Assembly (NCBI GenBank): GCA_047495785.1
Contig: JBLDXI010000042.1
Coordinates: 2,976,001 to 3,040,000 of the forward strand
DNA: 64,000 nt
Reading direction: 5' to 3'
DNA from: Lepidodermella squamata
Lineage: Eukaryota; Animalia; Gastrotricha
Shown here: piece by piece, positions 544 through 54,130 of the stretch
Layout of the letters: each line of letters opens with the position of its first letter
How positions within the stretch are numbered: position 1 is the first letter of the stretch
Notes under the pieces: model-generated
What the model was told of the DNA's origin: nothing
Databases searched by the model: none
The model's input: only the letters and a program-made list of their open reading frames with translations
Translations under genes and position numbers: made by a program

Positions 544-2187
544 ATGAATGAATGCTGGCGAGAAAATCGGAAATATCTCCAGTTGAAGCCCCGTGTTGCA
601 ACTATTTTGAATCGGTCGTCCAAGTACTTGAAAAGGAAGCAGAAAAAGGAAGTCATTTTCAACCGTCGACCGATCAGCCACTACCGGCCTCTAAATTTAC
701 GCCGAAACGGCAGTAATTTAAACACTGGGAGTACTGAAGACCCGAGTCTTAGTTTTCCTGGCTCCTTCGTTTCAACTTTGATCTACATCCCGCAGGTCCG
801 CCGCTTGATCGTTAGCAAACTAAATTCACTTGAAGATGGAGCAATGAAGTGTTTAATAGCTTACGTCGGAAGTTTGAGAAAAACTGACCTTGACTTGTTT
901 TTCCGAAATGTGAATTTTCCCCAAAAAGTTATGCTAGATTCTACCTCATTCGCCAGTCATTTTCTCGACTACCTCGAAAAGCTTCTGGGAAGCGAAATAT
1001 CTTCGCTATTTCTCGGCAAGTACTGCCGTCCTGGAGGACTGGAGTTCAATTTCACACAGCTCAATGTTGTTGTGCCTGATTTGAAGTTCAAAGCTGAAAT
1101 AAGTTTCCACTGGATCATTTCGGAAAACTTTCAAGGTGATGCGAAATTATCTGCTCTACCGAAAGTTTTATTGATCCAACTGACTCGGCTGGACTGCTGT
1201 TCAATATCGATCCATTTTCCGAACAAGCTTCTTTTCCCTCAATGTTTTTCGGGGTTAGCAAATATCCCTATCTACAATTTGATGACAATTTTTGAGTTGG
1301 ATGGTCAAGATGAAAACAGCTATCAGCACTCGGTCAAAATTCGAAATCTATTCAACAGCAGAATTTCGCCTTGGTTAGTTGGAGAAATGATTGGACCGGA
1401 TCAAAATGCGGCTTTTCTGGTTTCGAAAAACGCCTATGCAGTGTTATACGTCGCAGGAGATATTTTGCCACAAAATGCTAGACTAGCCCCAGGCCCTACA
1501 CCTACACCGACCCGATGTGAACGATCAGGTGCGAGAGAGATGGTTTTCAAGCTAGACCTATTCAATCTGAAGCCTGGTCGCCGCATGAGTCCGGCGGTAC
1601 TAGACAGTTATATCGACTTGATCATTCGTCACTCGAATAAGGAAATGTTCGCTTTTAGCTGGAAATTTATACTGAAATTCCTGGAGTGCGGAATTGACGC
1701 TGCTGCGAAAATTAGTGAACCAAGCGACATCAATACTTACGATTTCTTGATTATTCCTATTTTGACGCCTCGCACTAATCAATGGCTTGTTGCTGTTGTT
1801 TACCCGGCTAATCACCGGTTATTGTTCTACAACCCTGGCGTGGATACCGTCGGTCCAGTCGGCGAGGAATACTCGCCTATAATCGTCAAATGCCTCGCCT
1901 TACTTCGAGATCTCCGCTTCTGGCGTCGTAATTTAAAACCTCCTATTGTCGAGGAATTATGGACCTCCGACGAGTATCTTTCGGGTAGTTTCCCTCGCCA
2001 ATCGAGAGTTGAAGATAGCGGCGTTTTTGTTGCGAATTTCGTTCGGTGCCTGGTTGAACAACACGGCGACTACCTAGCTGAGATTCATTTCGATTTTTCG
2101 GCCGAGGGAATCGACTTGGCCAGAAATAAGATGCTTGATGATTTGATTAGTTTTCACTTTGCGCTCAATTCGAATTCAAATCGTTGA
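544..2187 (+). CDS. Pseudo-USP (C19) + pseudo-Ulp1/SENP (C48) fusion protein, paralog 1 (intronless)
   Basis: 547-aa ORF. USP-fold motifs: SEISSLFLGK, LPKVLLIQLTR, SIHFPNKL, YNLMTIF, AYAVLYV; the Cys box and His box are degenerate. C48 motifs: VLDSYIDLI, FAFS, DFLIIPI..NQW, LFYNP, PRQSRVEDSGVFV; the catalytic H/D/C positions are Q/N/S. Confidence 0.8.
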   Translation: MNECWRENRKYLQLKPRVATILNRSSKYLKRKQKKEVIFNRRPISHYRPLNLRRNGSNLNTGSTEDPSLSFPGSFVSTLIYIPQVRRLIVSKLNSLEDGAMKCLIAYVGSLRKTDLDLFFRNVNFPQKVMLDSTSFASHFLDYLEKLLGSEISSLFLGKYCRPGGLEFNFTQLNVVVPDLKFKAEISFHWIISENFQGDAKLSALPKVLLIQLTRLDCCSISIHFPNKLLFPQCFSGLANIPIYNLMTIFELDGQDENSYQHSVKIRNLFNSRISPWLVGEMIGPDQNAAFLVSKNAYAVLYVAGDILPQNARLAPGPTPTPTRCERSGAREMVFKLDLFNLKPGRRMSPAVLDSYIDLIIRHSNKEMFAFSWKFILKFLECGIDAAAKISEPSDINTYDFLIIPILTPRTNQWLVAVVYPANHRLLFYNPGVDTVGPVGEEYSPIIVKCLALLRDLRFWRRNLKPPIVEELWTSDEYLSGSFPRQSRVEDSGVFVANFVRCLVEQHGDYLAEIHFDFSAEGIDLARNKMLDDLISFHFALNSNSNR

Positions 2188-2278
2188 TTTTCTAATTTTG
2201 TTATAATTTTTCGTATTTTATGCATTTTTTGTACTTGGTGATGAAATTTGACTTGCTATTTAGGGATAATAGATTAAG

Positions 2279-3970
2279 ATGAAGCCGATAATTTTGTCGC
2301 GTGTCATTCGCTCAGTGGAGGTGCAAAATCCTGATGTGCTGCGGAGACCCGGCGAGTCATCTGAATTTCTGATTTCAAAAATGAGAACACCTTACCAGCT
2401 TCCTAAACCACGGAAGCTAACGCAAAGACCATTTGAATTGAAGCGGGCGAAGATACCTATTATTGTTGGCAGATCGCTTGATTTACAGGATGAAGTCCAA
2501 AATATCGGCGCTGAAATGAATGACGACCCGAGCCTCACTTTTCCTGGTTCATTCATTTCAGCTTTGATCAATATTCCGTATATTCGAAAATTGATCGTTA
2601 GTAAAACTAATTTACTTGAAGATGAGGCAATCAAATATTTGAAAGCCTATGCTGAAAGTTCGAAAAAAGCTGACCTTGACTTGTTTTTCCGAAAACTGAG
2701 TTTGCCGCGAAAAATTCTACTGGATTCTACCTCATTCGCCAGTCATATTATCGAATTTCTCGCAAAGCATTTTGGCGATGAAATTTCTTCGCTTTTTCTC
2801 GGCGAGTGTCGCAGACCTTCAAAGCAGAGGGGTTATTGGAGCGTGGCCAAATTTTCTCAGCTAAATTTCATTGTGCCAGACTCGAAATTCAATCAACAAC
2901 TCTCTTTTCAATCGATTAGTTTGGAAAACTTGAAAAATGATGCGGAAATAACCTGCCTGCCAAAAGTTTTGTTAATTCACTTGACTCGACTAGACCCGTG
3001 TTCAATGTCAATTCAATTTGCTAACAAGCTGCGATTTCCCGCGGGAATTTTCGCTGGATTGCCAAAAGTTCCTGTCTATAACTTGATGGCGATTTTCGAG
3101 CAAGAAATTATCGATGAAAACATCTATGAATATTCAATTAAAATTCGAAGTACACTCAATCAAGGTATTCCACAATGGTTGATCGGCGGAGCCCTCGGAC
3201 CCTGGCGATATGCGTCGCACTTTGAAGACCCGCTCGTGTCGAAAAACACTTACGCTGTGTTGTACGCTACGGAAGAAATTACCGGTTTCTTCCAAAATTA
3301 CGAAGCTAATATTGGACGATTAAATGACGCGCCCTTACAATACGATTTGTGGAAATTGGCAGCCGGGCGCGGCGTCACTTCGAGGGTCTTAGATGCCTAT
3401 CTCGACTTGATCACCCGTCGCTCAAATGGAAAATTATTCGCGTTCAGCTCGCATTTTTTCTCGACTTATTTGTCTCACGGTATCGAGGCAGCTGCAAAAA
3501 TCAGTAATCCGACTGGCTACCATTATAAAGATTTCTTGATCATTCCAATAACAGATTCAACTCGAAGTGATCAATGGCAAGTTTGTATCGCCTACCCGGC
3601 TTATAACCGGTTATTGTTCTACAACCCGGGCGTGGTTGCTCTCGGTCCAATTGGGGATAAATGTTCGCCTGAAATCGTCAAATGTCTCTTCTTACTTCGC
3701 GATCTGCAGGCCAGACAGTCTAACCAGGGTCCTCTTGACATTGAGGAATTATGGAACTCTGAAGAGTTTATAACAGGCAGTTTCCCTCGCCAATCGAGAG
3801 TTGAAGACAGCGGTGTTTTTGTTGCGAATTTCGTCCGATGCCTGGTTGAACAACACGGTCGCCTAGCGGAAATACATTTCGATTTTTCGGCCGAGGAAAT
3901 CGGCGAAGCAAGAAATCGGATGGTGTACGAATTGAAAACTTTATTGTTTCCGATTGTGAAACTGGGTTGA
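2279..3970 (+). CDS. Pseudo-USP + pseudo-Ulp1/SENP fusion protein, paralog 2
   Basis: 563-aa ORF colinear with paralog 1: DDPSLTFPGSF, LPKVLLIHLTR, DFLIIPI..DQW, LFYNP, PRQSRVEDSGVFV. Confidence 0.82.
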   Translation: MKPIILSRVIRSVEVQNPDVLRRPGESSEFLISKMRTPYQLPKPRKLTQRPFELKRAKIPIIVGRSLDLQDEVQNIGAEMNDDPSLTFPGSFISALINIPYIRKLIVSKTNLLEDEAIKYLKAYAESSKKADLDLFFRKLSLPRKILLDSTSFASHIIEFLAKHFGDEISSLFLGECRRPSKQRGYWSVAKFSQLNFIVPDSKFNQQLSFQSISLENLKNDAEITCLPKVLLIHLTRLDPCSMSIQFANKLRFPAGIFAGLPKVPVYNLMAIFEQEIIDENIYEYSIKIRSTLNQGIPQWLIGGALGPWRYASHFEDPLVSKNTYAVLYATEEITGFFQNYEANIGRLNDAPLQYDLWKLAAGRGVTSRVLDAYLDLITRRSNGKLFAFSSHFFSTYLSHGIEAAAKISNPTGYHYKDFLIIPITDSTRSDQWQVCIAYPAYNRLLFYNPGVVALGPIGDKCSPEIVKCLFLLRDLQARQSNQGPLDIEELWNSEEFITGSFPRQSRVEDSGVFVANFVRCLVEQHGRLAEIHFDFSAEEIGEARNRMVYELKTLLFPIVKLG

Positions 3971-4055
3971 TTTTTTATTCATTATATTTTGATATTTTCG
4001 ATATAAATTTTTGATAATTTTTATTAAATGTTGATACAATAGTGCATTTAAAAAC

Positions 4056-5573
4056 ATGAAGCCGACAATTCTGTCGCTTGTAATTCGTTCGGAAGAAAAG
4101 CAAAATTCGATTAGACTGAGAAAATCCGGCGAGACATCTGATGAGATGGTTTCGAAACTGAGCAAGATCACTAATTCGCCGGATTTTTCAAGCATTCCTG
4201 CCCTGAAACCTACCAAATTTGGCAGCGAAATCGTTGAAGATCCAAGTCTAGGCTTCCCAGGCGGTCTGATCTATGCCATCGTTCAAATACCGCCGATATT
4301 TCACATGTTGCAGAGCTGTTGGCCGCAAAGTGAATCGATGAATAAACTTTTTTCATACGCGACAGATTTTCGGAAATGTGACCTGGACGGCTTCTTGGAA
4401 AGTTTGAAATTCAGCAGGAAAACGATGCTGGACCCTGTTTTGTTCGCGAGCGAGTTGATGAAGCATCTCGGCGAGAAGTTCGCGACCCTTTTCTCCGGAA
4501 AATTCGCAAATTCCGCCCGTGGCATCAAGGCAGAGACTTTCAATCAGCTTAATCTCATTGTATCGCCTCAGAGTCATAATCTGACCATGTTGAAAATTTT
4601 ATTAGAAAATTTCCGTGAAAATGTGAAAATTGTTTGCTTTCCAGAGCTGCTACTGATGCATCTGACGCGATCAGATGATTGTTTGATGCAAATTTCCTTT
4701 GTTGACCATTTAACTTTTCCCGGGAAATTGATGTTGAGAAATGCGACTAGTCCTTCTTACAAGTTAGTAGCTGTTTTCGAGTTGAAACAATCAGGAGAAG
4801 AGGATTATCAGCACTTGGTGAAGATGCCTTTCCTACTTCATAGCAACCGTGTAAAAACTCGCCGCTTCACATCTAGTGATGCTTTTGCTGTCTTGTATGT
4901 TAAGGAGGAATTTTTATCATGTGAAGGCTTCAAAAATATTAAAGGTGACACTCGAATTTCTAAGCATGAATTTGCTAATTTCATTGCCGGCCTTGGTGTT
5001 TCGCCGTCTGTAATGGATGCTTACCTAGGAAAAATTATTTGTGCCTCAGCTAATCCGCGAATATTTTGTTTCGGCTCGGATTTCTATCCTAAATTCACTA
5101 ATCAAGGAATTTTCGCTGCTTTTAAGCTGGATAACTCTTTCAAAATGTCCCACTACGACTTCATGATCATTCCTATTTTTGACCCTCTAACGACGGTCTG
5201 GTACGTCGCAATTGCTCTCATGCGAAGTCGCGGCGTTCTTTTCTACAGCCCATTCGGATTAACTGGTGATCGAAAGTACGTTACAAATATTCTGAAATTC
5301 ATGCAACTTCTCGAGGAATGTGAAGCGTCTGTTTCAAGTAAAGTAGTTGGTAAAACTCCTCAGTGGTTTGAAATCGGTCCAGTTCTTGCGGAAGTTCCGA
5401 GCAACGTGCTGAAGGCTGATATTGGCCTTGTTATTGCGAAATTTGTGCGTCGTTTTGTTGAAAGTAGTACTGGCGACAATCCTCATGTCTACTTCAATTT
5501 TTTGATTGAAAATGTGAATGAAGAACGAAGTCGAATGATTGATGCGTTGAACGGCAGTTTTGATACTGAATAG
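4056..5573 (+). CDS. Pseudo-USP + pseudo-Ulp1/SENP fusion protein, paralog 3 (most divergent)
   Basis: 505-aa ORF. N-terminus MKPTILSLVIRS matches paralog 2 (MKPIILSRVIRS). Motifs: EDPSLGFPG, FPELLLMHLTR, YKLVAVF, DFMIIPI..TVW, LFYSP, DIGLVIAKF. Confidence 0.8.
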   Translation: MKPTILSLVIRSEEKQNSIRLRKSGETSDEMVSKLSKITNSPDFSSIPALKPTKFGSEIVEDPSLGFPGGLIYAIVQIPPIFHMLQSCWPQSESMNKLFSYATDFRKCDLDGFLESLKFSRKTMLDPVLFASELMKHLGEKFATLFSGKFANSARGIKAETFNQLNLIVSPQSHNLTMLKILLENFRENVKIVCFPELLLMHLTRSDDCLMQISFVDHLTFPGKLMLRNATSPSYKLVAVFELKQSGEEDYQHLVKMPFLLHSNRVKTRRFTSSDAFAVLYVKEEFLSCEGFKNIKGDTRISKHEFANFIAGLGVSPSVMDAYLGKIICASANPRIFCFGSDFYPKFTNQGIFAAFKLDNSFKMSHYDFMIIPIFDPLTTVWYVAIALMRSRGVLFYSPFGLTGDRKYVTNILKFMQLLEECEASVSSKVVGKTPQWFEIGPVLAEVPSNVLKADIGLVIAKFVRRFVESSTGDNPHVYFNFLIENVNEERSRMIDALNGSFDTE

Positions 5574-5676
5574 AAATTTGAAATTTCATGGACATTATTT
5601 TCTTACTGAGTTTTAAAAATTTGATCTACTTCGCTTTTATTTTCTGCCCTTTTAGAGGTTCTATTTTGATTTTATC

Positions 5677-7704
5677 ATGACCTCTTTGTCTACCTCACTG
5701 GAATCTCAAAGCGAAGACCAGGTTTGAAATTTTTTAAACGGGATACTTATTTTCAGCTCGAAATAATTGGAATATTTGATTGCTTCGGATTCTATTGTAA
5801 AGAAAATGAAATTAATTCATTTTATTTTTCACATTTTCAGCAGAACGCTTGTCCAGTTTGCATGCGGTACTACACCGATCCGCGAAGTCTCCCTGCCTGC
5901 GGGCATGTCATCTGCCTAACTTGCGCTTCAAAATTAGCTGGACCTCTAACTTACATTCACTGCCCTGTGTGCCAAGCTTACAACTACCTGGGCGATCAAG
6001 GTGTGAATGAGCTGAAAAGCGCACTCGTCGCTTATCGACCTAACGACTCGATAGCTAATCCGACTTTTTCGGGATCTAATGGCAGTTTGGATTTCGGTCC
6101 CGCTTCTGAGATTTCAGATGGCACAATTTGTCAACATCGTACCTCAAAATCTGGTTCAAGCTGCCAACACTGCAGTCAAAAATTCTGTCTGAGTTGTGAA
6201 ATTAATCACAAGGAAAGAATCAAACTTGAAATAATAGAAATGGCTATTCGGGTATTTTATTTTTCAATTCCTGATCTCTGAATTTGGATAATTATTTCAG
6301 GCTGGCTCAACTGTTGGAATCGAAGCTGGTATTCGCCTGAAATGTTCAAGAAATATCGAACAAGTGAAATCGGAAGTCCTGCAGTCATTTCAAGAAATCG
6401 AAGATGACTTTTTATGCAAACTTGAACAACGTAAAACTATCATACTCGAGCGGCTCGATCAATTGGGAGCGGAAAAAGCTGGAAAACTGGCGAAAATCGA
6501 CATCAAAGCCGACCCGGGTATGCTAGCCTTGGCCCAAGCCCTGCCCAGTCGATCTGTTCTAGCAATCAGTTTGAATGATCTCGCAGTTCTGCATCAAAAA
6601 ATTGCAAATCAGGTGTGGTTTTTTTGAAATCTTCTAATTTTAAGGTGGATTTTTGAATTTTTCTAGATACGCGAAAGTGAACACAAAGTGGCAGAAGAAA
6701 TGGGGAAGGAAAGCATAAACATAAATTTCGATGTTTTGCTGCCTGGAGTTAGCTTCAAACCTATGCCTGAAAGGCATTTCGAAGTTGCGAATTGGGTGGC
6801 GGAAAAGTCTCCCAAAACTGAGATAGCCGAGATCCCGCAGCCGAAACCAGAAATCTTGTCATCGCCTGCAAGTCCGACCAGCTCAAGTGGAAAGCTTGAA
6901 GAATCGGATCAACCACCTGTAAAGCGGTCTAAAAATGGGCAAAACGAGAAGGCGAAAACTCGTTTAGCCTGTTGTGAGCTCGTTCAAAAAATTCAAACTG
7001 GCAACCTAGATTTGGTGAAAAATTTCTTCGCAAAACACAGCGATTGGTCACCGTCATTCATCGGTTCGATGATTGAATCTCGCGAAAATGGCGAATTCAC
7101 TGCCCTCCACACCGCAGTTCGTAAGGGAAATCTCGAAATTGTCAAATTTTTGATCGAGGAATGCTTCGCGAATCCGCTGGCGTTGACAAATGACGTTAAA
7201 GCGAACTGCCTTCATGTTGCAGCTGCTCATAACCACCTTGAAGTTTTTCGCTATATCGCCCAGAGAAATCCGTCGCTTTTGACTAGCGTTAATAAATTCG
7301 GCGTAACAGCACTTCACACCGCGATTTCGCACAACGGGTTTGAAATTGTGAAGTTCCAACTTTTTGCCTTGCGTGTCGATCCGAACATAAAAACGGGCGG
7401 GGACGGGAAATCAGCTCTTCATTTCGCATCGGCTCATTCTTCGATTCAGATGGTTCAGTTGCTGATTTCAGCCGGTGCCCACATTTACGCGAAGGATAAT
7501 TACGGGAAGCTTCCGATTCATGCGGCGGCTCAAAGTGGCGCCGATGCGATTGTCAATTTTTTCCTGCAAATCGACCCGCGTCTAGCATTGGCTGTTACTA
7601 CGAAAAACTGGACCCCGGCGCAAGTCGCTCGAAACAAGGGCCATCAGAATCTGGCGAATGCTCTTCAACGATTCGAAGCCCGCATAACTGGATGTGGAAT
7701 TTAG
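5677..7704 (+). CDS. TRIM-like RING/B-box/coiled-coil protein with C-terminal ankyrin repeats, copy 1
   Basis: Exons 5677-5721, 5841-6251, 6301-6612, 6667-7704 join in frame across GT-AG introns. C3HC4 RING CPVC...CGHVICLTC...CPVC; B-box-like CQH...CQHC...CLSC...H; helical region; about 6 ankyrin repeats (TALHTAV, TALHTAI, SALHFAS, LPIHAAA). Confidence 0.88.
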
Positions 7705-7865
7705 CTTAGTTTCATCGAGGAGAAACGAGTGACTTTTTCTATATTTTTTCAATTGATTTGATATGAATTTTAGTTATTTTCTGTTTTTCTCAATTTCAAC
7801 CTGATTTTGTGCTTGACATTTTTTCATTTTTTTCAGTAAAATTAGCTATTTTCGTAGGTTTTACA

Positions 7866-8289
7866 ATGCCACAGATTAGGAAGCTTGACGAGTTTGACTC
7901 AGATTTCGAAAGTTCAGTCATCAATCATTTTCTCTTTGTTGGTTTGAAGGCGATCGCCCCCAGGTATGTTTCCTCGGAATCCGCTTCGGATAGTGTAAGT
8001 CCAGACCAATACGATTCGCCATATTTTATTCGAAATTTTTGTTCAGATTTCCGATGATCCGGCTCGCCATGTACGCGTAAAGACGCCGTTAGTTGGCAAA
8101 TCTGGCTTGTTGGTCCAGAGAAGGTGCCGTGACTGTGTGGCTATCTTGAAGGCTTTGGGTTTGAATGGTTACCTCGAAACTAGAAAATTCGCGATGGCTA
8201 CTTATCTCGTGTGCGACGGCTGCCCTTCGAAGCCCTACCTTTGCTTGCGTTGCTTCGAGCGCCACAAATCTCAGCTTAACTCTTCTTAG
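7866..8289 (+). CDS. Stand-alone piggyBac-type C-terminal cysteine-rich (zinc ribbon) domain protein A
   Basis: Exons 7866-7994 and 8047-8289. SDFESSVINHFL...ISDDPARH...RRCRDC...TYLVCDGCPSKPYLCLRCFERH. Confidence 0.78.
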
Positions 8290-8413
8290 TCGATAAAGTG
8301 GACTAATTTATATATTTCGCTATTTTTATACCCTTCGCATCACGGCTTGATTAATAATTTTATTGCTATTCGAATTTCATCGTTTTGTAATTTTAGTGGC
8401 GGATTTTGATTCG

Positions 8414-8828
8414 ATGGCTTTGACTAGAATTACTACCGAATCCGATTTTGAAGTGGTTTTGATTGACTACCTTTTGTTCACCGGCTTGAAGTCTTTAGGA
8501 AACAGGGTGCCTGCTAAAATTTTAGCCGCGGAAAAGGACAGCGTAATTTCGTTTAAAAATTCGCGATTTTATTTCTTGATGTTTTATTTTACAGAAAATT
8601 AAGGGTGACTCAGATCGGCACGTGCGCGTTAGGACGACTGTTCGAGACCAGAGTGGGCAGTATCAGAACAAAATATGCCGCAGCTGTTGTTTGCTTCTGA
8701 AATTACTCGGGATCACGTTTCAGATAGCCGCCAATCGTTTCGTTTACAAAACGACATTCGTTTGCAATGGGTGCCCTTCAAAGCCTCACATTTGCCCTCG
8801 CTGCTTTGAACGTCACTTGCAACATTGA
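8414..8828 (+). CDS. Stand-alone piggyBac-type CRD protein B
   Basis: Exons 8414-8542 and 8595-8828. SDFEVVLIDYLL...ICRSC...TTFVCNGCPSKPHICPRCFERH. Confidence 0.78.
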
Positions 8829-8983
8829 AATGATTTTCAAGTTCTATTTTTCATGTTTCATATTTACAGTTTTGCCTATTCAATTTTTTATTTAAGTCTC
8901 GGAAATTGATAATATTCGTAGCTCGTAGCGGTGTTTTTTCAATTATCGATTCTACCTTTTCATCCTTCGTAGCTCTCGTGTAA

Positions 8984-9409
8984 ATGACCGGAAATAGTTT
9001 TTCGTCTGATTTTGAACCGTTTTTCGTCGAATACCTCCTTCATGTTGGTATGGGCGCTGTTCCGCCGCATTACTTGCCTAGATCCACCATGGAACTTGTG
9101 GATAAAGTGAGCAAATCACGATTTTCCCTCCGAAACAGAAAACATTCTTTTTAGGTTGTCGATGATCCGGGCAACCACAAACTGGTGAGAACCGCCTCGC
9201 GGTTCAGCAATGGTCAACCTCAAAGGCTTGCGTGCCGTCATTGCCGCGCTCTCTTGTCCGCCCTGGGGTTTTCTTGCCATCAAATCAACAAATATGTGAA
9301 AACGGTCATTTATGTGTGCGATGGGTGCCCATCGAAGCCTGCCCTATGCGGAAGATGCTTCGAGCGCCACAAAATCGTGCGAGAAGAATCGCCGAACAGA
9401 AAAAATTGA
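8984..9409 (+). CDS. Stand-alone piggyBac-type CRD protein C
   Basis: Exons 8984-9106 and 9155-9409. SDFEPFFVEYLL...VVDDPGNH...ACRHC...YVCDGCPSKPALCGRCFERH. Confidence 0.78.
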
Positions 9410-9592
9410 TGACCCATTTTCATTCGCATTTTATTTTTTTATCAACTCGGCGACATTTCTTTTATATAATATGAAATTTCTGAGATCTGAGATTTTATCT
9501 AAATTTTATAAAATCATGTTTCAACGGTAATAAAATAGTAAAAATAGGGAATTTTCGATCACAGAAATACAATTTATATCGCTAACCTCTTA

Positions 9593-10012
9593 ATGAACCC
9601 GGAAGCGTTAAGTGTCGCTACGAAAAACGATTTTGAGTACGCGTTTATCGAATACTTGCTGCAAACTGGTTTCATCGCATTACCTCCCAATTTAAATCCG
9701 AAAAAATTAGTGGCCGAACTGGAATCGGTGAGTTTTCTCTCTCGTTTTCAACTAATTCTGATTTATACATTGTTTAAGATTTCTGATGACCCAGACAATC
9801 ATGTGCGAGTTAAAACAACTATTTTGGGTAGAACCGGGCGGCCAATTCAGCGATTTTGCCGGAACTGCTGCGCCCTCATCAGCGCTCTTGGATTAACTAG
9901 CAGAGACCACAAAAGAATGTACATTTGTTATACGCGTTACGAATGCAGTGGTTGCCCGTCGAAACCGCCCTATTGCCAGCCGTGCTTTGATCGCCACAAA
10001 TCTTCTAAATGA
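9593..10012 (+). CDS. Stand-alone piggyBac-type CRD protein D
   Basis: Exons 9593-9727 and 9779-10012; the 51-nt intron is in frame within the ORF. NDFEYAFIEYLL...FCRNC...TRYECSGCPSKPPYCQPCFDRH. Confidence 0.78.
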   Translation: MNPEALSVATKNDFEYAFIEYLLQTGFIALPPNLNPKKLVAELESVSFLSRFQLILIYTLFKISDDPDNHVRVKTTILGRTGRPIQRFCRNCCALISALGLTSRDHKRMYICYTRYECSGCPSKPPYCQPCFDRHKSSK

Positions 10013-10081
10013 AATATTTTCCACCTGAATTAGAGCATGATTTTGTTTGCTTTTAGCCCAGTTTTGTTGACAGGCTTCGAA

Positions 10082-10487
10082 ATGAAAAAATCTGACGATA
10101 AATCTGATTTCGAAGTTGCGTTTATTTATCACCTCCTTGATACTGGCTTGAGATCTCTATCACCTCGGCATATTCCAACTCGGCAAGTTCAGGAGCTAGA
10201 AACTGTGAGTAAATTTTTCCAACATTTCCTACCAAATATTTAGTTTTTTTCAGATTTCGGACGATCCTACAAAGCACATTCGCGTCAAGGTTAGTGGAGG
10301 CCCCGGCGGTAACCTTGATCCTGTGTATCGAATCTGTCGAAATTGCCGTGTTTTACTCATGACTTTTGGGCTTCCTTACAAAAAGATAGAACACTATGCT
10401 GGGAAAACTTTCTACGCTTGTGAAGGCTGCCCATCGAAGCCGCACTTGTGTCTAAAATGCTTCGAACGGCACAAGCAAACGAGCTAG
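10082..10487 (+). CDS. Stand-alone piggyBac-type CRD protein E
   Basis: Exons 10082-10204 and 10254-10487; exon 2 is absent from the ORF track. SDFEVAFIYHLL...ISDDPTKH...ICRNC...TFYACEGCPSKPHLCLKCFERH. Confidence 0.78.
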
Positions 10488-10551
10488 ATTTTCGTTAAAT
10501 ATTTTTCGTAATTTTATGGAATCTGATTTTTAGGAATAATTTTTATTACGA

Positions 10552-13500
10552 ATGTTTGATAATGAGGAATTTGTTGTGGTCGACGAAGATGAACCGTCAA
10601 GTAAGAAGCGAATGATTGATGTAAGTGAAATCAATTTTTTCTTTTATTTATTTTTAAAAGTATTTTTCTTCAGCCAACAATATGTCAAGTTTGTCGAACT
10701 ATTTTGAGGGTACCAAAAATCTTGCCGAATTGTGGCCATTGTTTCTGTTTGGAATGCTTGAATAAGTCGATCACGCCTAAAGCACCCCATGGAGAGATTG
10801 CCTGCCCGGAATGTTCGGTTGCTAGCAAACTCGGCTCAAGTGGTGTCTATGGTAATTAAGTCAATACTCTTTCATTTCATATTCATTCTTGCAAGTGAAA
10901 AGTGAGGTTTGGCGAAAACTTCGAATTTGTTGAGAAAATCGGAAGATTTTAAAGGCTTTAAAAAGGAGTCCTTCTACCAGAACCAAATTGACGGTGAGCG
11001 GAACCATATTTGCCCTCGAGCGAAGCCCGATTTCGGTATTTTTAATTGCCCGAGAACATATTTTACAGGGTGCCATGGTTGACCCATATAATTATAAATA
11101 AATTGACATTAAATTCAGCGTAAAATTCTACGTACGACTTAGTTTTCAATTCTGAAGTCATTTTTTGCCTCAAATTCTTGAAATTATTTGAAAAGGGACA
11201 CTTCATATTTTGGAAATTTTGAGTTTGGTTCCGCTAAATAATAGGTAATCTGCTTTGAAAAGGGCGATTCCCATCTTTCAATGTGGCACATTTTGAAATT
11301 TGTGTTCTCCTTAATCTCCGTAAAGTCTTCCCGTTTTGCCGGCTTAATTTTACGAATTTTTGACCACCCCTCACGATTCCTCACCTTTTTAAACCCATTA
11401 GAAAATTGATTGAGCAGAAGATGAGTACTTGTACATTTTCAGAAGAGGCGCCCGACCGCATCATAAACAGGCGCGTGTTTGACACGGCCATAGAAAAAAT
11501 TGGCTCGGATTCATAAGTTTTTTTTAGGATTTTTTTTTAAGAATGAACGCGTGTTTAACGGAACGTTCATTCTGGCGTTTTTTCTTGACGATCACGCCAA
11601 TCAATAATGACAGATAGCTAGAGCTTGCTGTAACCATTCGAATTTCGGTCCTAATTTACGACGGTTTCAAGTTTACCCACCGAAAAACAAATGGAGGAAA
11701 AAATACTGATCGTGATATGGACAGCCTTTCAGAATCACACTGTAGATGTCATTTTATCGTTTGAGTAATTTCTGGTATTTAATACAGGTCTCAAGACAAA
11801 TTTTCCTCTTCAAAAAGTGGCTGAGTTGTTTCGCGCCGAGGAGAGTGGTTTTGCCCCGATGGGACTCCCCGAAGCTTGCCGGCACGTTTACCAGTCTGAA
11901 TCAGCAAATTCTAGCTCGAAAATTTGTGAGCATTGCGTATTGCCGTTTTGTCAAACCTGCCTTCGGGGACACCACGAAATTGTAGCCAAACAGGCCATTG
12001 ATACGTACAAGGTCACAATGAGCCGGTTGAAGTACTGCTTCAATTCTGCGGATCCTAACGAAATTTCAGAATCCGTCGAGAAGGCAGTGATTTCCAAGGC
12101 GAATGCGGCTAAATTGATGGCTCAGCTTGAAATTGAACGGGTCAAGGAAATGATCAATGAAAAATTGCGGGAGAGATTGGCAAAAATGGAGTTCGAAATC
12201 GATACTGTTGCGAGTGGGAAATTGCAGGAGATTCGCAAGTCGTTTGGCAAACTCGGCGACTTGTACTCGTCTTTACAAGCCAAATCAAGCCTGCTGTCAA
12301 CGTCCCCCAGGGCTATGTCTCTTACTGAGCTAGCAACTATGCATAACGAAAACGCTTTTGTTGGCCAACAGGTATGTGCAGTTTTTATCTCGAAGATTTT
12401 TTAGATTTCTTAATTCTTTGATTAAATTATATTCACGATAAGACTTCATTGAAGTTGATTATCATCTAAAAATCGTGTGTAACCTTGCGTTCGGTCCTTG
12501 AGATATGCTTGCCGAAATTTTGAATTTTTTTCAAATTTCTGAAAAATTTAGGATTACTCGCTTATTATCGTAAGAATGAGCGTATTACGCTCAAGACAAG
12601 GGGCTTGATAAATAGCCTAGCAAAAAACCAGATCCAGAGGATCTCACTAGTGGGAAATTCGATAAACTGAGCCGCGTATCGATCCAATACAGAAATTTTT
12701 ATGGCAGACGAGTCACGTGTTTCGAAATTTTTCCAATAATAGATGGGAAATTAAAATCTCCAACCATGCAAAAGACACCAGAAAGATAATATTTAATATT
12801 TGGAGACCTTATATGGGTGAGATAGGTGATTGGTAACATCAAAGAAACAATAGAAGTGAAATCAATTTGAAGGAAAAACAGAAAGCGTTGACTACCGGCC
12901 CTAATATCACCGAAGCTTCTTGCTTCCAGCCTGAGTCAACACATCAGAGAAAAATCGACGTAGCCATAAAAGCAAGGCTCCGGGCCCATCGTAGTTCCGT
13001 CCAGCCCCAAGTGTCGGATGCGATAAACAGTAATTCAACAAGAATAGATCGATATGGTCGGTCCTAGGTCCTTGCTGTCGCCTGATGTCATGTTGCGGGA
13101 TGCCCACTAACCATTTCTATGTCGTCCTCGATTTTCTGAGCTGCGGTGTCCCAACTGAGCTTAGCAGCCGATCCTGGTGCTCGGATTCTCTGGCAAATGA
13201 CACGTATCACACCGAGACACAACCCGTGAAGGTAGCCGGGGACGGTTTCTTCTATTACATTGTAGAAAAGTAGGCGAAACAGTGGTCTCAAGTTGTAGGT
13301 ACCCTCCGTTTCAACATTGCCTTTATATGTGCCTCCGGATTCGTCGAAACGTTGCTTAGATAGTAGCATTGCTAGTTTTTCAGACTCGTAAGTTCGAAGG
13401 TCTAAAGGGGCTCGGAGCTTCGCCCTCTCCCGGAAAAATGACAGTACTATTGCAACCATATCTATAGGAAGTCGAATTAGAATATAAACTGGCAAATGTT

Positions 13501-16019
13501 TAGCCGTGGCAAGTCAGGCCTGGAATTCAAAATTGAAGCTAATTATTAAAATACCTATATATCAACAGTTATTAGCATAATTTACGAAGAATGGCTGGTG
13601 CAAGACTGGAAGAAGACCATTCATTAAACATCGCTGTCTTCAGTTAAACTGCTGCTTTCGTTTCCGCTGAGCTCCAGGTCGCCTTGAGCTTCTCCGTTGT
13701 TATTTTCTTCTTGACGCTGACTTTCTTCGTCTTCTTCGTTAGGTACCACCTCGGCTGTTGTGATCGGCAATTAGGGCCGAGTTGCCGGAGCATGCGCATC
13801 TTCTCTTGTTTTCTTGACGGCCGTGACGGCATGGCTGGGCTGCGGATGGTCAAGCAGCGGTTGGCCAGTCAGTTTGTGGTTGGCCGAGTTGCGATTTTCG
13901 CTGTTTAATCTTATGGTGTTATAAGCGGCTTTTGGAGTATGCAAGTTGTTTTTGGTTTCAGCTGTCACGGTTGGGTTTAGCCTTGATCCTTTGATCCTTC
14001 AAATGAAATCGCCGAATTGCAAGTAGTTGATTAAAATATTCGGCAGCAGCAGGGCGATTAAATCCTCCTCATGCTCGTCAGGTAGAAATTATATGGTGTT
14101 TAAATGTGGATTGCGACCGACCCTCAACTTCTGCATTGTATTTCACGAGATTAGCCGCATGACAACGTTTATCAGTTTTCTGGTAGTTTTTACAGCTGCG
14201 CATCATCAAAGCAAGAGGACAGGGATGGTGGGAATAAATTTAGTGCGATTCTCAGTGTTTCTCAATGGATAATGCCAACTTCTAGCTTTCATATTTTCAT
14301 CAAGCAGCTCCCACTTGCTACCAGTGGAAACCTCGGGAACGCGTCTCGCTAAGTTCAACTGTTTTAACACGGCATAGGCCTCGTCGCTCTAAATCCCACT
14401 GATTTCCTCGAATAACCTCGTTCAGTCGATGGATGGTCGCGAACCCGGCAAATAGGCTCACCGTCCTCGTTGGTTCGTTTTAGACACCTCTCCCCTGCTT
14501 TCAGACAATCATTCCTTGCTAGTTGTGGCATCAATTCATGTAAATGATCGAGGTCCTCAAGGTCGTCGGCTAAACCATCAGCAGCCTGAGCAAAAGATAC
14601 AACTGGGAAACTACTGATAATCTTCGTCACTTCATCGTGCTTATTGTTATCAAGTTTCTTCGTTGATGGGTATTGCCTAAAAGAATAAGCTGTAAACCGT
14701 TAACCGCAGAAAATTTAGTTGCTGAATTTCAGTAACTCGGTGCTAGAGATTTTCAGTGTTACATTGTTACAGATATTGAGTCATTGCGGTCGGTCGCTGT
14801 CGGGCCAGAAGTCCCGAGTAGGTTCAGTAGAGCAGAGAAAGTGCGAGAAGGTGCATTGTTATTCTGCCGTTTTGTAGCTCTATTCAGCGCCGTTTGGAGC
14901 GTTTAGAGCCTCTCACATCTCTCATAGCCAGGAACAACTGTTCCCCCGTCTCTTGTAGCTCGCCCGATAGGGTTAGCGTTCAGCCGATTTCGAAATTTGT
15001 TTGGTCCTAATATCCGTGTACTTATATAACATTTATTTTAGATTGAAGTGTGCCAAAAATTGAAATCTGAGATCGATAGCCATAGCATCGAACCAAGTAC
15101 GTGTGACCTCGTTCCGCCCGTCATTGTCAATGCCCTCGATTCGGCTCCTTTCAAACCCTCAGCTTCTTGGAAAGAGAGTTCGACCGATGAGGTAATTTGG
15201 TCAAATTGTTTAATCGCTAATTGTTTAATTCAATATTCATTTGTTAAACAGGTTCTATGCGCCTCGAGAGACGATTTAATTCGAGAAGCGACCAACGGGA
15301 ATGCTGAATTTTTCGAAAATCTCCTACCCAAAATTTGGTCGCTGCGGCAGAAAATCAGCCTCCGAAAATTGGCCGAGACGCGGGAGAAAAGTCGATCAGA
15401 CGAGCCCACCCTTCTGCACCTTGCTTGCATCTCCGGTAATTTTAAACTCGTAAAATGTCTGGTCGAGAAATTTTGCGCCGATATCGGGGTTAAAACCGCC
15501 GATCGGAAATTGACCCCATTCCACACGGCCTCGTTGCACGGCCATCTTGAAATCGTCGAGTATCTCACTCAATTAGACCCTGAACAGCCGTCGATTAGAG
15601 ACGAATTCAACACATCAGCTCTTCACATGGCTGCGACGCGAAACAAAGCTGAGGTAGTTGAGTTTTTAGTCGAGAAGGGCAACGCTGAGATTGAGGCTCG
15701 GGATTCATTCGGGCGAACTCCGATGCATTTAGCGGCGAAAAAGAACGCGATTCGCGCCTTCGAAACGCTGTGGCGACTCGGCGCTGACGTCACAGCGGTC
15801 GATGGGCAAAATCGCAGTCCATTGCATGTCGCATGTGCCGCGGCTAGCTCTGACATTGTCCGTTATTTGTTGGAAAAATGCTGTAAATCGCGGTTTTTCC
15901 ACGAGTTGTTGAATAAGCGGGACAGTGCCGGCCTGACTGCGGCTCGATTGGCACGGCGGAAAGGCCATGACCATATTGTTGCTCTATTTTCAAAATCGTC
16001 ATTGTCTCCAGATTCGTAA
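10552..16019 (+). CDS. TRIM-like RING/B-box/coiled-coil-ankyrin protein, copy 2 (with two large repeat-containing introns)
   Basis: Exons 10552-10620, 10674-10851 (RING CQVC...CGHCFCLEC...CPEC), 11788-12371 (GLKTNFPL, B-box, coiled coil), 15042-15191 and 15252-16019 (ankyrin repeats) join in frame. Same architecture as copy 1. Confidence 0.8.
11078..11240. repeat. Interspersed repeat, copy 1 (intronic)
   Basis: Shares attaaattcagcgtaaaattct, aattattt.aaaag and tttggttccgctaaa in the same order with 59693-59875. Confidence 0.65.
13088..14690 (-). mobile_element. Decayed, frameshifted Helitron-like Rep fragment inside intron 3 of TRIM-ANK copy 2
   Basis: Minus-strand pieces read NDCLKAGERCLKR..ICRVRDHP / WHYP..FIPTIPVL / RSCKNYQKTDKR..ANLVKY, resembling the region around Helitron Rep motif III (Y..KY). 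Frameshifts separate the pieces, and the intron is about 50 times the local norm. Confidence 0.4.
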
Positions 16020-18256: not shown

Positions 18257-19081
18257 TCACGTCATCTCAACAGAACCGTTGCTCGAACTCATCAGTGAAC
18301 TATTCCTTAGCCGGTTGACACTGGCCAGTCGCCTTACTTCCAGATCGCTATCTTCGCAATCACTCTCCTCGCCGCTAGATTGACTCGAGATTTGCCGAAC
18401 GCTCTGCGTTTTAGTAGCCACCCGACATACAGCAGTGGCGATAGCGCTCGGATCACTTTGATTAGAAGAAGAACTGTTAACATTGCCAAGACTGCGATAA
18501 TGCAAGTCGCCCGTGTATCGTTGAGTCTGCTGGCCAGTTTTCGTCTTTTTGTTGTAGTATCTGCTTGACTTATTCGAGCTCGCCGTCGTCGTAGAGTCGT
18601 TGCTGATCCGATTTTCAGGTGGCTGCTGCTCGCTAATCAAGTTTGTAATAACGAAAACCGAGGCGTAAAGCTGGCAGTTGTCGCACCGGCACATCCAATG
18701 AAACGCATGTAGACTATCGACGATTTGCCGCCCACCTGCTGTAACTTCGCTGCCAATGTCACTGATAGCAAAACTGTTACTGCTCATGTGATATCGATAG
18801 CTGTTCATATTGTTGCTTGCATCGTTGAAATAGTTGCCGTCTGTGCCTTCCCTTGCCGAATCGTTTTGGTTCGTGTCGTCAATGTCTTGCAGATTTCGCC
18901 GGCGTTTTTTGTGATATTTCTCGACGGCAACAATGAGGCGCCTGCTTAGAATGCGCATAGCTATCAAACGCCATCGAATGGACTTGATTTGAACGATAAC
19001 ATCGACCAGCCATTCGACAAATCGGCCGTTACGGCGTCGAGTGGCTGCGCCTTTACGATTATTCCTCACCTCCGAGTTCAT
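18257..19081 (-). CDS. Intronless Ser/Arg/Asn-rich disordered protein, WxVD-motif family member 1
   Basis: 274-aa ORF with RFVEWLVDVIVQIKSIRW and CRCDNC, shared with the neighbouring ORF. Confidence 0.65.
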   Translation of the reverse strand: MNSEVRNNRKGAATRRRNGRFVEWLVDVIVQIKSIRWRLIAMRILSRRLIVAVEKYHKKRRRNLQDIDDTNQNDSAREGTDGNYFNDASNNMNSYRYHMSSNSFAISDIGSEVTAGGRQIVDSLHAFHWMCRCDNCQLYASVFVITNLISEQQPPENRISNDSTTTASSNKSSRYYNKKTKTGQQTQRYTGDLHYRSLGNVNSSSSNQSDPSAIATAVCRVATKTQSVRQISSQSSGEESDCEDSDLEVRRLASVNRLRNSSLMSSSNGSVEMT

Positions 19082-19817: not shown

Positions 19818-20447
19818 TCAGGCTTGGCAGTCGGAAACCTGACGACGTCGTCCTCCATTGCTGGACTCGTAAGATCTCCGATGGTTCGCCACATTATCCG
19901 AGCGTGAGACGTCTCTCTCTGACCGCCATCGCTTTTTGTGTTCGCGTTCCTCGCAGATGCTCATGCGGCTCAATTTGTAAATAGGTGCAACGTTAACAGG
20001 CGAGGTAGATGCAAAGCTTTCTCGAGACATTCGAGGGCTCCGAGCGGAATATCGTCGCCCATTTGCGTTGTTACTGCTGTTGCTAGCGTAATCTCTCCTC
20101 ATCTGCTGCGGTGAGACAGTCCTTGTCGTGTAAACTTGAGAATTGTAGCCCGACGACGACCATGATCCCGACAACTGCATGCACTCGTCGCATTGGCAGT
20201 CGACATCGGACCCGGACGATGGAGCCATGTCATCGAGCCGAGTTGACGAGTATGCTCGATCTTTAGATCGCAAGTTGGAAGATGACTGCCGCCTTAAATG
20301 CCGGCTGCATCGCCACTTGAGTGATTTGATCGTAACAATGGCGTTCACCATCCAATCCAACACGCTACTGCTTTGTCCGGAGGATGAACTTGGGGCTGAC
20401 AACTTGCGAGACATCTTTATTTTCGCTGATGTTTTTACGCTCTTCAA
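19818..20447 (-). CDS. WxVD-motif family member 2
   Basis: ORF (first ATG probably at MSRKL) with VLDWMVNAIVTIKSLKW and CQCDEC; Ser/Arg-rich. Confidence 0.65.
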   Translation of the reverse strand: MKSVKTSAKIKMSRKLSAPSSSSGQSSSVLDWMVNAIVTIKSLKWRCSRHLRRQSSSNLRSKDRAYSSTRLDDMAPSSGSDVDCQCDECMQLSGSWSSSGYNSQVYTTRTVSPQQMRRDYASNSSNNANGRRYSARSPRMSRESFASTSPVNVAPIYKLSRMSICEEREHKKRWRSERDVSRSDNVANHRRSYESSNGGRRRQVSDCQA

Positions 20448-21424: not shown

Positions 21425-23283
21425 ATGTATCGTTGTCAAGATTGGAGAACATGCCTGGACGAAACAGACATAGAAATGGCGCGATCGACAAAGGTAAGAA
21501 TTAATACGGGCCCTCAGGATAAAATTAAAATGTTTGGCACAGTGCCATGGATTACTAAGGATGTACATTATTGGAGGGGTTATTCGCAGAACTGCATGGT
21601 GTTTGCTAGTAGCTGGATCTCTGTCCTTATTTTTCTACTTGGTGAGTGACCGCGTGCAGACTTTCGCGGCTTTTCAGTTGAAGACCGACGTTTCGACTGT
21701 TTACGAACACAAAATGCGATTCCCTGCAGTCACTATCTGCAACTTCAACATGTTCTCCTCGAACCTGATGAACAGTTTCGACTATCAATTGGTCGAGAAT
21801 GTTTCCCTAGGGCTAGCCATTGAAGTTAAAATGCTGAATGCATCAGCTATTAATTTAAATGGGAGCTTGGACTCTTTACTTGAAAAATACAACACTGTCG
21901 AAAGGGATCTCCGCAAGAGATATAACGGTTAGCTAACTTGAAAAATGTATTCCTAACGCAATGCTAATGACTTCATTCAGTCACATCATTCAATACAAGC
22001 GCTTGGATGGATCGAAAAAGTTGGCAACTGAAACCGGAAGTTTTTGAGTGCAAATTCGGGGAACAACCATGTGGCATTGAGGTACCCACAATTAATACGA
22101 AGCTTTCTTCAATTTCTAAAATTCAATGAATTCCAGAACTTTACGACGACGCTCACTCGATATGGGAAATGCTACGCATTTAATTGGGAGCCAGATATCG
22201 ATAGATTCCAAGTTTGGCCCGGTTCGAGTGGCGGTTTGTCGTTGCATATAAACATAAATCAGGTAGTTTCGGGGTTTACATGGCAATCTGTAACACTGTA
22301 AATGTCCCAGGATAATTATACACCTTACCGATTGTTTGGGGAGCTGCAGACAGCGGTATGTAGACGCAAGTGTGTTGGGGTTCGACGTACAAAATGTCCT
22401 TCTCTAGGCTGGGATAAAAGTTATTCTTCACGAGCCCTCAGAACCGGCTGACTCCGCTTTTGGAATTGCTGCTATGCCTGGTTTTACTTTGCACTTACCC
22501 CTTCGTACGCAGATATTCGAGACAGTGAACAACGCGCCGTGGAATGTTTGCGGGGACAGGTCTCTATTTAAAGGGCAATTCAAGTTTTACAGCCTGAAGG
22601 GCTGTTTCGCTCTGTGCGCAGCTACACTTTACCTTGTTAAATGCAACTGCACTCCGTGGTTTCTGCCCCAACTGGATGAGCAACTAGGCTTCGATAAACC
22701 CAATCAGCCTGTGTGTTCCATTGCAGAAACTACTTTCTGCGAGCAGGTCAAAATATCAGAAGATGACCGGTTGAAGTGTGTCAATGATTGTGCGGAGGCT
22801 TGTAAGAGCTACGAATATGAATATAGCCCATCTTATTCTCAATATCCTATACTTACTAAAAGTGCTTTGAATTCATCTCAGCTGAGCTCGGGCAACGGGA
22901 CCTCAGATCTGAAAGGTAGTCGCTTTCGAAATGACTGGTTGAGGGTCAAAGTTTACTACGAGCAGTTCCGAACAGTCTCTCGGCGAAGTTATGAAGCCTA
23001 CACATTCAGTCAATTCCTGGGTGAGATCTACAGCACTTCTTCGTTATTTGCTGGCTTCAGCGTGATAACGTTTTTCGAATTGCTGGAATATCCTTTCCTG
23101 AAAGTTTATCGCCGATGGCTTTGGCCTATATGGATAAAGCGACAAATGAGGCTGCAACAAAGTAGGCGAAGAGATCCTGTAGCCACAGTCAGCGATAATG
23201 TTGACAAAAAAGAAAGACATGGTATGGATTCCCTAGTAAAAATTTTCGTAATTTCTGCTGCGGCGCGTAACACAGCAGCGTGA
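21425..23283 (+). CDS. DEG/ENaC (ASIC-like) amiloride-sensitive channel subunit
   Basis: Spliced: STK|CHG pre-TM1 motif, TM1, FPAVTICNFN, YGKCYAFN, GLSLHININQ, GIKVILH, Cys-rich thumb, TM2 LFAGFSVITFFELLE. At least 6 exons. The 3' end may splice at 23222 to a short last exon near 23328-23420. Confidence 0.9.
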
Positions 23284-38364: not shown

Positions 38365-39571
38365 ATGCTATTGCAGATCTTAACAATACTCAGCTTCGGC
38401 AAGCTGGTTTCCGGCTATGGTATGAGCTGAATTTTTCCAACAGTGCAGTCCTGTATGAAATTAATTGTAGGAACTCTGACTTGCTACAACGGCACCTCGT
38501 ACGATGGAACATTTTCAGATTTTGTTGTTACTGGATGTCAAGCTTGCACCGTAAGAGCCTCAAAACATAATCGATTGTTTCATCACCATTATTCACTCTA
38601 GAAAACTGTCGCTAGTTACCAACTCGGTGGCCAAGTTTATAGCTACCACAGTTGGTCTGGCATCGGCTGCGCTGAGCGTACCGCGAACTGGACTTCGACT
38701 CTGATGAATCCGAAAGACCCAAGCGAGTGTGGAATCGCGAATTCGATAACGAATAACGGCATTCGAGCCAGTCTCTTGAATGACACCTTCAACTGCTCGA
38801 ACATCCATACTGTCAGCGTTAGTGCTCAGGAAGATAGGTTGACGTGGAAGAGCTCTTGCTTCTGTGAGTTTTAGCCTTCAAAGCCAAAGTTTCGCTATTT
38901 TATTGCCGTTTCAGGCTGCACGTCGAGATGCAATTCAGCAGACTTTGTTTGCAACAATAATAAGACTATGGATGACGCAAGAATTCCTAGCACTTTCCTT
39001 GACAAGGACACCTTGATAGACACGACGTCGGTTAAAAAGTCCGAAACTGACGATGACTATGTGATAGGAATAAGATGCTACACTGGTGTAACAGCGGGAT
39101 CTGGGTTTCCAAGCGAAGTGGCAAGGAATTGCACTGCATGCACGGTAAAATTGAACAATTGGTCTAAATCTTTCATCATTGCTGATTGCCTTTCAGAAAC
39201 ATCTTGTCAACTACCAATTCATGGGTGTCTCATCGACCTACGCCATCTGGGGCGGCGTTGGTTGCACCAAGAAATCTCCCCTGGAGCAGAAACCAGAATT
39301 TACTAGCAAATGCTTCATCAACGCATTCGGGACTAGTTTATCTACGAATTTGGCAGAATTGGACGCAGCTGTAGCTATGGTCTTTGAGAGTGAGAGCGGG
39401 GCTGACTATCAGGCCACTACAACGGTATGCTCGCCTGCCGTCACTCTCGGCCGCACTTACGATCCAAGCGGTTCAAAAGTCACTGCTGTTACCTGTTCTT
39501 GCTGCCGAAATTCATGCAATTTCCAGGGCTGGAAATGCGGAGACGACTACGATAGCTACGTTAAGGAATAG
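38365..39571 (+). CDS. Two-domain variant three-finger/LU protein (secreted)
   Basis: Domain 1: LTCYNGT...GCQACT|K...WSGIGC...CFCCTSRCNSADFVC. An acidic linker follows. Domain 2: IRCYTG...NCTACT|K...WGGVGC...CSCCRNSCN...WKC. Confidence 0.78.
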
Positions 39572-39634
39572 TAAAATCCTCACGCCAAGTTGGCATGGGT
39601 AATATTAAGAAGATAACAGTACGACATGTTTATT

Positions 39635-43291: not shown

Positions 43292-43627
43292 TCGATCATC
43301 AACATCAACATAAAAAGTGTGAAATTCTGTCGTTATATAGTTTCTTGATTTTCATGTTTCTTACAATTTCCTACTCCTTTGATAATTAGTAATAATTTTA
43401 ACCTCCCATGATTGTAGGCACTATAATGCCTTTCTCAACATAGAAAATTGATGAATAAATAATTGAAACAAGTATATTATGTGTTTACCAAAAAGAAAAA
43501 GGTTGCCTAGCAACGGAGACAAAAACAGTGAAGGACCTAACGAAAGGGCTGAGTTATCGATTGCTAGCAGAACCTCTTCTCACCTTGAGTGATAGAACGG
43601 TAGAATAGCATAAATCAACCACTTCAA

Positions 43628-54028: not shown

Positions 54029-54130
54029 CGATTAAGCCAACCTGCTGCCAAAAAAAAAGAATTCAACGCATTGAAAAAGGATGAGACCGAAATTAACCTT
54101 TTTTGATCCGTAATAATAAAATGGAGAAAC

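Follow-up and report, generated by a model that had tools for sequence, protein, structure and literature searches.

A tightly packed ten-gene block of predicted double pseudoproteases, RING-ankyrin proteins and piggyBac CRD-like mini-genes in the gastrotrich Lepidodermella squamata

Organisation of the ten-gene block

The window analysed here is a stretch of 64,000 nucleotides (nt) from the gastrotrich Lepidodermella squamata (GenBank assembly GCA_047495785.1, contig JBLDXI010000042.1, positions 2,976,001 to 3,040,000 of the forward strand; coordinates below count from its first letter). At 544-16019 it carries a block of ten genes, all on the + strand, which fall into three families: predicted fusions of two inactive proteases (US1, US2 and US3), RING-ankyrin proteins (TA1 and TA2) and small genes encoding a probable piggyBac-type cysteine-rich domain (CRD; m1 to m5). 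The first-pass annotation of this DNA had described three protease-like fusions, a TRIM-ankyrin gene, five mini-genes and a second TRIM-ankyrin gene, and both the coordinates and the order US1-3, TA1, m1-m5, TA2 were confirmed. The genes are listed below, with protein lengths in amino acids (aa) and ORF standing for open reading frame.

544-2187, + strand: US1, intronless ORF of 547 aa, with a pseudo-USP half at residues ~60-330 and a pseudo-Ulp1/SENP half at ~335-545
2279-3970, + strand: US2, uninterrupted ORF of 563 aa, a paralog of US1 (53% identity) with weak Pfam UCH and C48 matches
4056-5573, + strand: US3, uninterrupted ORF of 505 aa, a divergent paralog (32-36% identity)
5677-7704, + strand: TA1, 601 aa, exons 5677-5721, 5841-6251, 6301-6612 and 6667-7704
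7866-8289, + strand: m1, 123 aa, exons 7866-7994 and 8047-8289
8414-8828, + strand: m2, 120 aa, exons 8414-8542 and 8595-8828
8984-9409, + strand: m3, 125 aa, exons 8984-9106 and 9155-9409
9593-10012, + strand: m4, 122 aa, exons 9593-9727 and 9779-10012
10082-10487, + strand: m5, 118 aa, exons 10082-10204 and 10254-10487
10552-16019, + strand: TA2, 602 aa, exons 10552-10620, 10674-10851, 11788-12371 and 15042-16019

The genes are densely packed, the coding share reaching ~85% across 544-10552 against a long-ORF content of ~20% across the other 48 kb of the window, and the G+C content of the block is uniform with that of its flanks. From stop codon to ATG, the successive spacers measure 91, 85, 103, 161, 124, 155, 183, 69 and 63 nt; their composition (T 47%, A 26%) is that of the introns, and TTTYAG stands immediately 5' of the ATG in six of the nine. 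In operons resolved by trans-splicing the intercistronic spacing resembles these short distances, and the short T-rich spacers suggest operon-like co-transcription of several of the genes.

Paralogs share 28-53% amino-acid identity, and tblastn returned E-values (expect values) of 1e-15 to 1e-156 within the US and mini-gene families and of 4e-22 between the ankyrin parts of TA1 and TA2, which argues for paralogy rather than chance resemblance. The same program found no further copies of the three families at 16-64 kb of the window. No terminal inverted repeats bracketing the block were detected, the 543 nt 5' of US1 held no coding frame, and Rfam and tRNA scans returned no matches.

US1-3 as double pseudoproteases

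A profile of US1-3, compared with 1.84 billion representative proteins, gave 213 matches at E<=0.001 (best 6e-15), nearly all of which fall on profile positions 340-550 in the C-terminal half. Peptidase_C48 was present in 28 of the 29 matches scanned with Pfam, the exception being P0100, a UCH/USP protein that aligns to profile positions 165-328. Direct Pfam matches of the US proteins were weaker, with Peptidase_C48 in US1 at E 0.005 (below the cut-off) and UCH at only E 0.23. The N-terminal halves were related to the UCH protein P0100 by hhalign with a probability of 96.5% (E 9e-10, 159 columns), and in a Foldseek search with the AlphaFold2 (AF2) model of US1 all 50 PDB matches listed were USP catalytic domains, including those of USP28, 7, 30, 9X, 47, 18, 46, 12 and Ubp8 (E 6.5e-5 to 1.2e-3 over 170-230 columns). 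A PDB profile search with the USP-like half gave no match.

The catalytic positions of the C-terminal half were read from an alignment with six active Ulp1-family proteins. The Ulp1 His of the HW motif is replaced by Gln in US1 (QW) and US2 and by Val in US3 (VW), the Asp of YDS by Asn in US1 (YNP) and US2 and by Ser in US3 (YSP), and the Cys of DCG by Ser in US1 (DSG) and US2 and by Ile in US3 (DIG). The oxyanion Gln is retained in US1 and US2 only, and the Trp of WLND, one of two Trp residues in the SENP substrate tunnel, has been lost from all three proteins. In the N-terminal half, the region of the USP Cys box has in all three paralogs a conserved DPSL-FPG-(S/G)(F/L)(V/I) motif followed by a helix, and no Cys occurs in either; opposite the His-box (GHY) catalytic His of P0100, US1 has Gln, and the paralog alignment places Gln there in US3 and Glu in US2. 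Since the catalytic residues of both halves have all been replaced, the earlier description of these genes as fusions of a dead USP with a dead SENP is correct, being borne out by the C48 homology, the USP fold and the altered active sites alike.

No fused USP and C48 orthologue occurs among the best 150 of the 213 profile matches. The one UCH match, P0100, proved to be an ordinary USP, encoded on a compact eukaryotic contig that is unrelated. Word-based homologue searches with US2 and with the mini-gene profile retrieved nothing, an exact look-up of US2 found it not on record, and metagenome scans for the US and mini-gene families confirmed no relative. As a control, an exon of a DEG/ENaC channel gene of the same window was submitted to the word-based search, and it also returned nothing, so that the empty searches show only sparse sampling of the lineage and carry no information on novelty.

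Around the dead active-site motif, US1 (1951-2066) and US2 (3743-3858) are 89% identical at the DNA level over 116 nt PRQSRVEDSGVFVANFVRCLVEQHG, compared with ~77% elsewhere. Gene conversion could account for this patch, as could strong constraint on what was once the catalytic cleft.

TA1 and TA2

Both TA proteins combine a RING, a B-box-like motif, a helical region and an ankyrin array, and both genes have four exons separated by GT-AG introns. The zf-RING_UBOX profile scored 36.1 bits in TA1 and 29.1 bits in TA2 against a Pfam cut-off of 25.2 (RING E 6.5e-9 and 1e-6, respectively), and Ank_2 also exceeded its cut-off (E 2.8e-32 in TA1, 2e-33 in TA2). The first-pass annotation had called them TRIM-ankyrin E3 ligase genes; the RING and ankyrin parts of this assignment stand, and the B-box is found only below threshold, as an ANCHR-like_BBOX match in TA2 (E 0.087), with no match in TA1. 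The pattern C-x-H...C-x2-C-x4-C-x2-C-x3-H follows the RING in both proteins, and the region after it has weak matches to helical families. TA1 and TA2 are 28% identical.

An RNA contig confirms the 2670-nt intron of TA2, since its end at 12371 continues with the 30 nt that open the exon at 15042. This intron contains the following insert:

12372-15041, no strand assigned: long intron of TA2, with an insert of higher G+C content whose ORFs, on the minus strand, match no family

The minus-strand ORFs lie at 13088-13495, 13644-13853 and 14364-14630 and have no match to Pfam families; the insert is probably a degraded mobile element. Depth in a DNA-like sequencing run falls to zero at 12600-12999, inside this intron, so the insert may be polymorphic for presence or absence. 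In intron 2 of the same gene, word depth in that run rises to 530-870x at 10800-11200 and 11400-11600, compared with ~72x nearby, and these over-deep stretches are high-copy repeats.

The mini-genes m1-m5

All five mini-genes are intact, and each has a single phase-0 GT-AG intron of 48-52 nt at a homologous position. Their proteins, which are 37-45% identical in pairs, share the invariant pattern C-x2-C ... C-x2-C-P-S-K-P-x2-C-x2-C-F-[ED]-R-H. Pfam zf-Tnp_2 (PF13842) matches three of the five, with m1 as the best (E 7.3e-5, 23.7 bits, profile positions 7-57 of 60) and m3 at E 0.005. The previous identification of these genes as carriers of a piggyBac CRD thus finds agreement in the invariant Cys/His set and in a match just under the Pfam cut-off, and on these sequence features the C-terminal domain is probably a piggyBac-type CRD. 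Exon 1 has no Pfam match. The transposase core DDE_Tnp_1_7 is not attached to any of the five, which are stand-alone tails of 118-125 aa.

A derivation of the mini-gene finger from the B-box or RING of the neighbouring TRIM genes was ruled out (hhalign probability 0.5%). The 51-nt intron of m4 (9728-9778) is in frame and free of stop codons, so that unspliced RNA would encode a protein of 139 aa, 17 of them inserted, which may represent an isoform made by intron retention.

Expression, constraint and age

Two sequencing runs were available. One is RNA-derived, as indicated by a SMART cDNA oligo, which one RNA loose end carries at 11011; it represents a single library, its contigs were aligned over 7000-12999, and it holds 21-30% of the block's sampled words. 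The second behaves as genomic DNA with two haplotypes. RNA contigs cover exons of TA1 and TA2, with depth for TA1 across 7000-7599, and they record splicing of three mini-genes: in m1 a contig connects ~7988 to 8047, in m2 a 496-nt contig joins 8366-8540 to 8595-8846, and in m3 a loose end at 9108 runs into the start of exon 2. There is almost no depth over m4 and none over m5. The proposal that the ten genes are co-expressed finds no support in this one library, in which expression is uneven: m1-m3 and TA2 are covered, m4 and m5 almost silent. Neither a spliced leader at internal genes nor polycistronic RNA was seen in the assembled RNA contigs over 7000-12999.

Between 7000 and 11000 these contigs display many opposite-strand joints near gene ends (e.g. 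8182/8295 and 8282/8366), which are probably library or assembly chimeras; alternatively, they may mark transcript ends a few nt beyond the stop codons.

Variants relative to the window were classified in both runs for the 40 best-supported of 77 differences. Among these, the mini-genes carry 12 synonymous and 6 nonsynonymous variants, and the TRIM-ANK genes 13 synonymous and none nonsynonymous, a synonymous excess that points to purifying selection. A comparison of nonsynonymous and synonymous divergence (dN/dS) among paralogs, which had been suggested as a check, was informative for US1 and US2 (dS 1.17, dN/dS 0.32), all other pairs being saturated at synonymous sites. The paralogs are old duplicates that are still intact. 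Taken together, splicing and expression, the mostly synonymous variants and the age of the paralogs indicate that the genes of the block are maintained.

Discussion

We lean, by somewhat better than an even chance, towards the view that the block consists of three adjacent, lineage-specific tandem arrays which are independent and possibly co-transcribed. Each array would have arisen by old local duplication and been kept by purifying selection. What we infer beyond this concerns co-transcription, a transposon origin of US1-3 and the biochemical roles of all three families. By analogy with pseudo-deubiquitinases (pseudo-DUBs), which serve as scaffolds or activators (PMC10919355), US1-3 would most likely work without catalysis, either as scaffolds or by binding ubiquitin or ubiquitin-like proteins, a role favoured by the lack of a nucleophile or general base in either half. 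TA1 and TA2 are probably RING E3 ligases with the ankyrin repeats as substrate-recognition module. The mini-proteins would most likely act as domesticated transposase tails that bind DNA or chromatin through the CRD. CRDs participate in the processing of transposon DNA (PMC5861402), and one domesticated piggyBac transposase interacts with heterochromatin, as stated in the title of PMC3861120; given these roles, the mini-proteins could compete with piggyBac transposase, and, as with truncated-transposase repressors, they might plausibly repress piggyBac elements by such competition. As to ancestry, DNA transposons repeatedly carry protease domains of the Ulp1, OTU and C19 (USP) types (PMC2836005), and some of the C48 matches of the US profile are fusions (MULE+C48, where MULE denotes a Mutator-like element; DDE_3+C48+herpes-type DUB; C48+OTU). 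Together with the intronless structure of the US genes, these findings make it plausible that US1-3 originated from transposons, and both of their domains may descend from transposon-borne proteases.

Several points weigh against this interpretation or parts of it. The AF2 model of US1 is poor (predicted local distance difference test, pLDDT, of 43), and proteins labelled pseudo-USPs have proved active before (USP53/54, PMC12037411). For the mini-genes, the zf-Tnp_2 score of m1 lies 0.3 bits under the Pfam cut-off of 24, and the CRD is not backed by the PDB profile search (chance-level matches), by the Atlas or by the fold search, which returned nothing meaningful for the tail as modelled by AF2 (pLDDT 66). 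Finally, with a single shared strand, tiny spacers and two of the three families in the ubiquitin/SUMO pathway, pure coincidence is an uncomfortable explanation for the arrangement. Regarding the first family, USP53 and USP54 presumably keep a catalytic Cys, unlike US1-3.

The arrangement of the block invites readings in which its genes work together. In the hypothesis of the first-pass annotation, they would form one co-expressed transposon-control system, an analogue of KRAB zinc-finger protein (KRAB-ZFP)/TRIM28 silencing built from other parts. In the version considered here, the CRD mini-proteins would recognise piggyBac ends or transposase, the TRIM-ANK proteins would ubiquitylate or SUMOylate these targets, and the mark would be read or shielded by the inactive USP/SENP fusions. 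The same-strand packing with intron-like spacers of 63-183 nt, the constraint on all families and the thematic fit of an E3 ligase, pseudoproteases of Ub/SUMO folds and a transposase-derived zinc finger are all in keeping with it. Nevertheless, nothing beyond linkage was found for such a module, hardly any RNA comes from m4 and m5 in the library that covers m1-m3 and TA2, and the loss of the WLND Trp weakens the SUMO-reader role, so that we regard it as very unlikely; that the block is one co-transcribed unit encoding transposon surveillance, assembled largely from transposon-derived parts, appears very unlikely indeed. A joint three-part function is, we think, less likely than independent functions. 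A narrower coupling, in which all or part of the block is a true operon and only the US and TRIM-ANK proteins cooperate, a pseudo-DUB serving the E3, for instance, as substrate adaptor or allosteric partner, and the mini-genes have merely expanded between the ligase genes, seems to us rather doubtful. Spacers of 85-103 nt do join US1, US2, US3 and TA1, pseudo-DUBs are known scaffolds and activators in ubiquitin complexes (PMC10919355), and the TA pair, at 28% identity against 37-45% among the mini-genes, has diverged much further, so that the mini-genes may have been duplicated later than the two ligases; the assembled RNA contigs, however, gave no sign of trans-splicing or of polycistronic RNA over the interval that they cover.

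Other readings place the origin of the block outside the host. A large mobile element might have left it behind or carried it as cargo, or it might be a nursery for genes derived from transposons; these genes would perhaps have little host function, with a USP+Ulp1 protease linked to a transposase as the source of US1-3 and a piggyBac tail as that of the mini-genes. The mobility of Ulp1, OTU and C19 domains on DNA transposons (PMC2836005), the three kinds of C48 fusion named above and the lack of introns in the US genes all suit this origin. We still hold it to be unlikely, considering that no terminal repeats surround the block and no transposase lies inside it, that the duplicates are old yet intact with mostly synonymous variants, that the mini-genes and TRIM-ANK genes have spliced introns, and that the G+C content equals that of the flanks. 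An endogenised segment of a giant virus deserves hardly any credence. Genomes of Nucleocytoviricota encode USP, Ulp1-like, RING and ankyrin proteins, and the nearest Atlas clusters of US2, based on language-model features, are giant-virus UCH families with scores of 0.79-0.81, a level that is chance by the tool's own calibration; moreover, the block has RNA-confirmed spliceosomal introns, shares the composition of its flanks and contains no viral hallmark genes.

Among known systems, each of the three arrays resembles an established family and departs from it. Like USP39/Sad1 and PAN2/USP52, which are expected to be scaffolds or binding modules, US1-3 keep the USP fold and have lost the catalytic Cys and His (PMC10919355). 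They differ from these proteins in the fusion of the dead USP to a dead Ulp1/SENP of another clan, and in being intronless, in tandem triplicate and without detectable orthologue. With Ulp1/SENP proteases the homology extends over ~200 residues (best E 6e-15); C48 domains of this family, including transposon-borne ones (Ginger1, Mutator-like elements), are often fused to DUBs and transposases, whereas in US1-3 the His-Asp-Cys triad is replaced, the WLND Trp is missing, and there is neither a transposase nor terminal repeats. If US1-3 are dead double proteases of the ubiquitin/ubiquitin-like system kept in three old copies, they would represent a new type of pseudoenzyme and possibly a natural probe for non-catalytic recognition of ubiquitin and SUMO.

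TA1 and TA2 share with TRIM/RBCC proteins the N-terminal RING, a Cys/His B-box-like motif, the helical region, a variable C-terminal recognition domain and tandem expansion, and are distinguished by an ankyrin array in place of SPRY/B30.2 or NHL and by a B-box that is sub-threshold. For the mini-genes, the known domesticated piggyBac genes (PGBD1-5, PiggyMac, Tpb2p) offer the parallel of a C-terminal cross-brace CRD under selection; these genes keep the transposase core, whereas m1-m5 are tails of ~120 aa with one intron in a five-copy array. Truncated-transposase repressors of the P-element KP type provide a further comparison, from which repressor activity of m1-m5 would follow by analogy. 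If the mini-genes are indeed kept piggyBac tails, they would offer a clean case of transposase domestication at the level of a domain, and, whether encoded by the host or by an element, they may repress piggyBac, itself a widely used engineering tool. With KRAB-ZFP/TRIM28 silencing the block would share a proposed logic, namely the pairing of diversified DNA-binding zinc fingers with a scaffold or ligase of the TRIM type; the resemblance does not go beyond the concept, the block having no KRAB domain, no C2H2 array and no PHD-bromo modules of the TRIM28 type. Were the module real, it would constitute a pathway for transposon control that evolved independently, the counterpart in an invertebrate of KRAB-ZFP/TRIM28 and without common components.

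Other features of the window

Downstream of the block, on the - strand, two neighbouring Ser-rich ORFs (18257-19081 and 19818-20447) are paralogs with a common N-terminal W-[LM]-V-x-x-I-V-x-I-K-S-[IL]-[RK]-W-R and a C-x-C-D-x-C motif; they have no significant Pfam family, the sole match being to Pex16 below threshold (E 0.027). At 38968-44086 and 53520-54794 lie several small Cys-rich ORFs with C-x-C-C-x(3-4)-C-N near the C-terminus and hydrophobic tails, which look like a secreted or glycosylphosphatidylinositol (GPI)-anchored family of the Ly6/uPAR type. The DEG/ENaC (ASC family) channel gene, whose exon served as the search control, occupies 21534-23283 on the + strand with at least two exons; its best Atlas cluster counts more Nematoda than any other phylum, and it reaches an Atlas score of 0.97 to ASC clusters.

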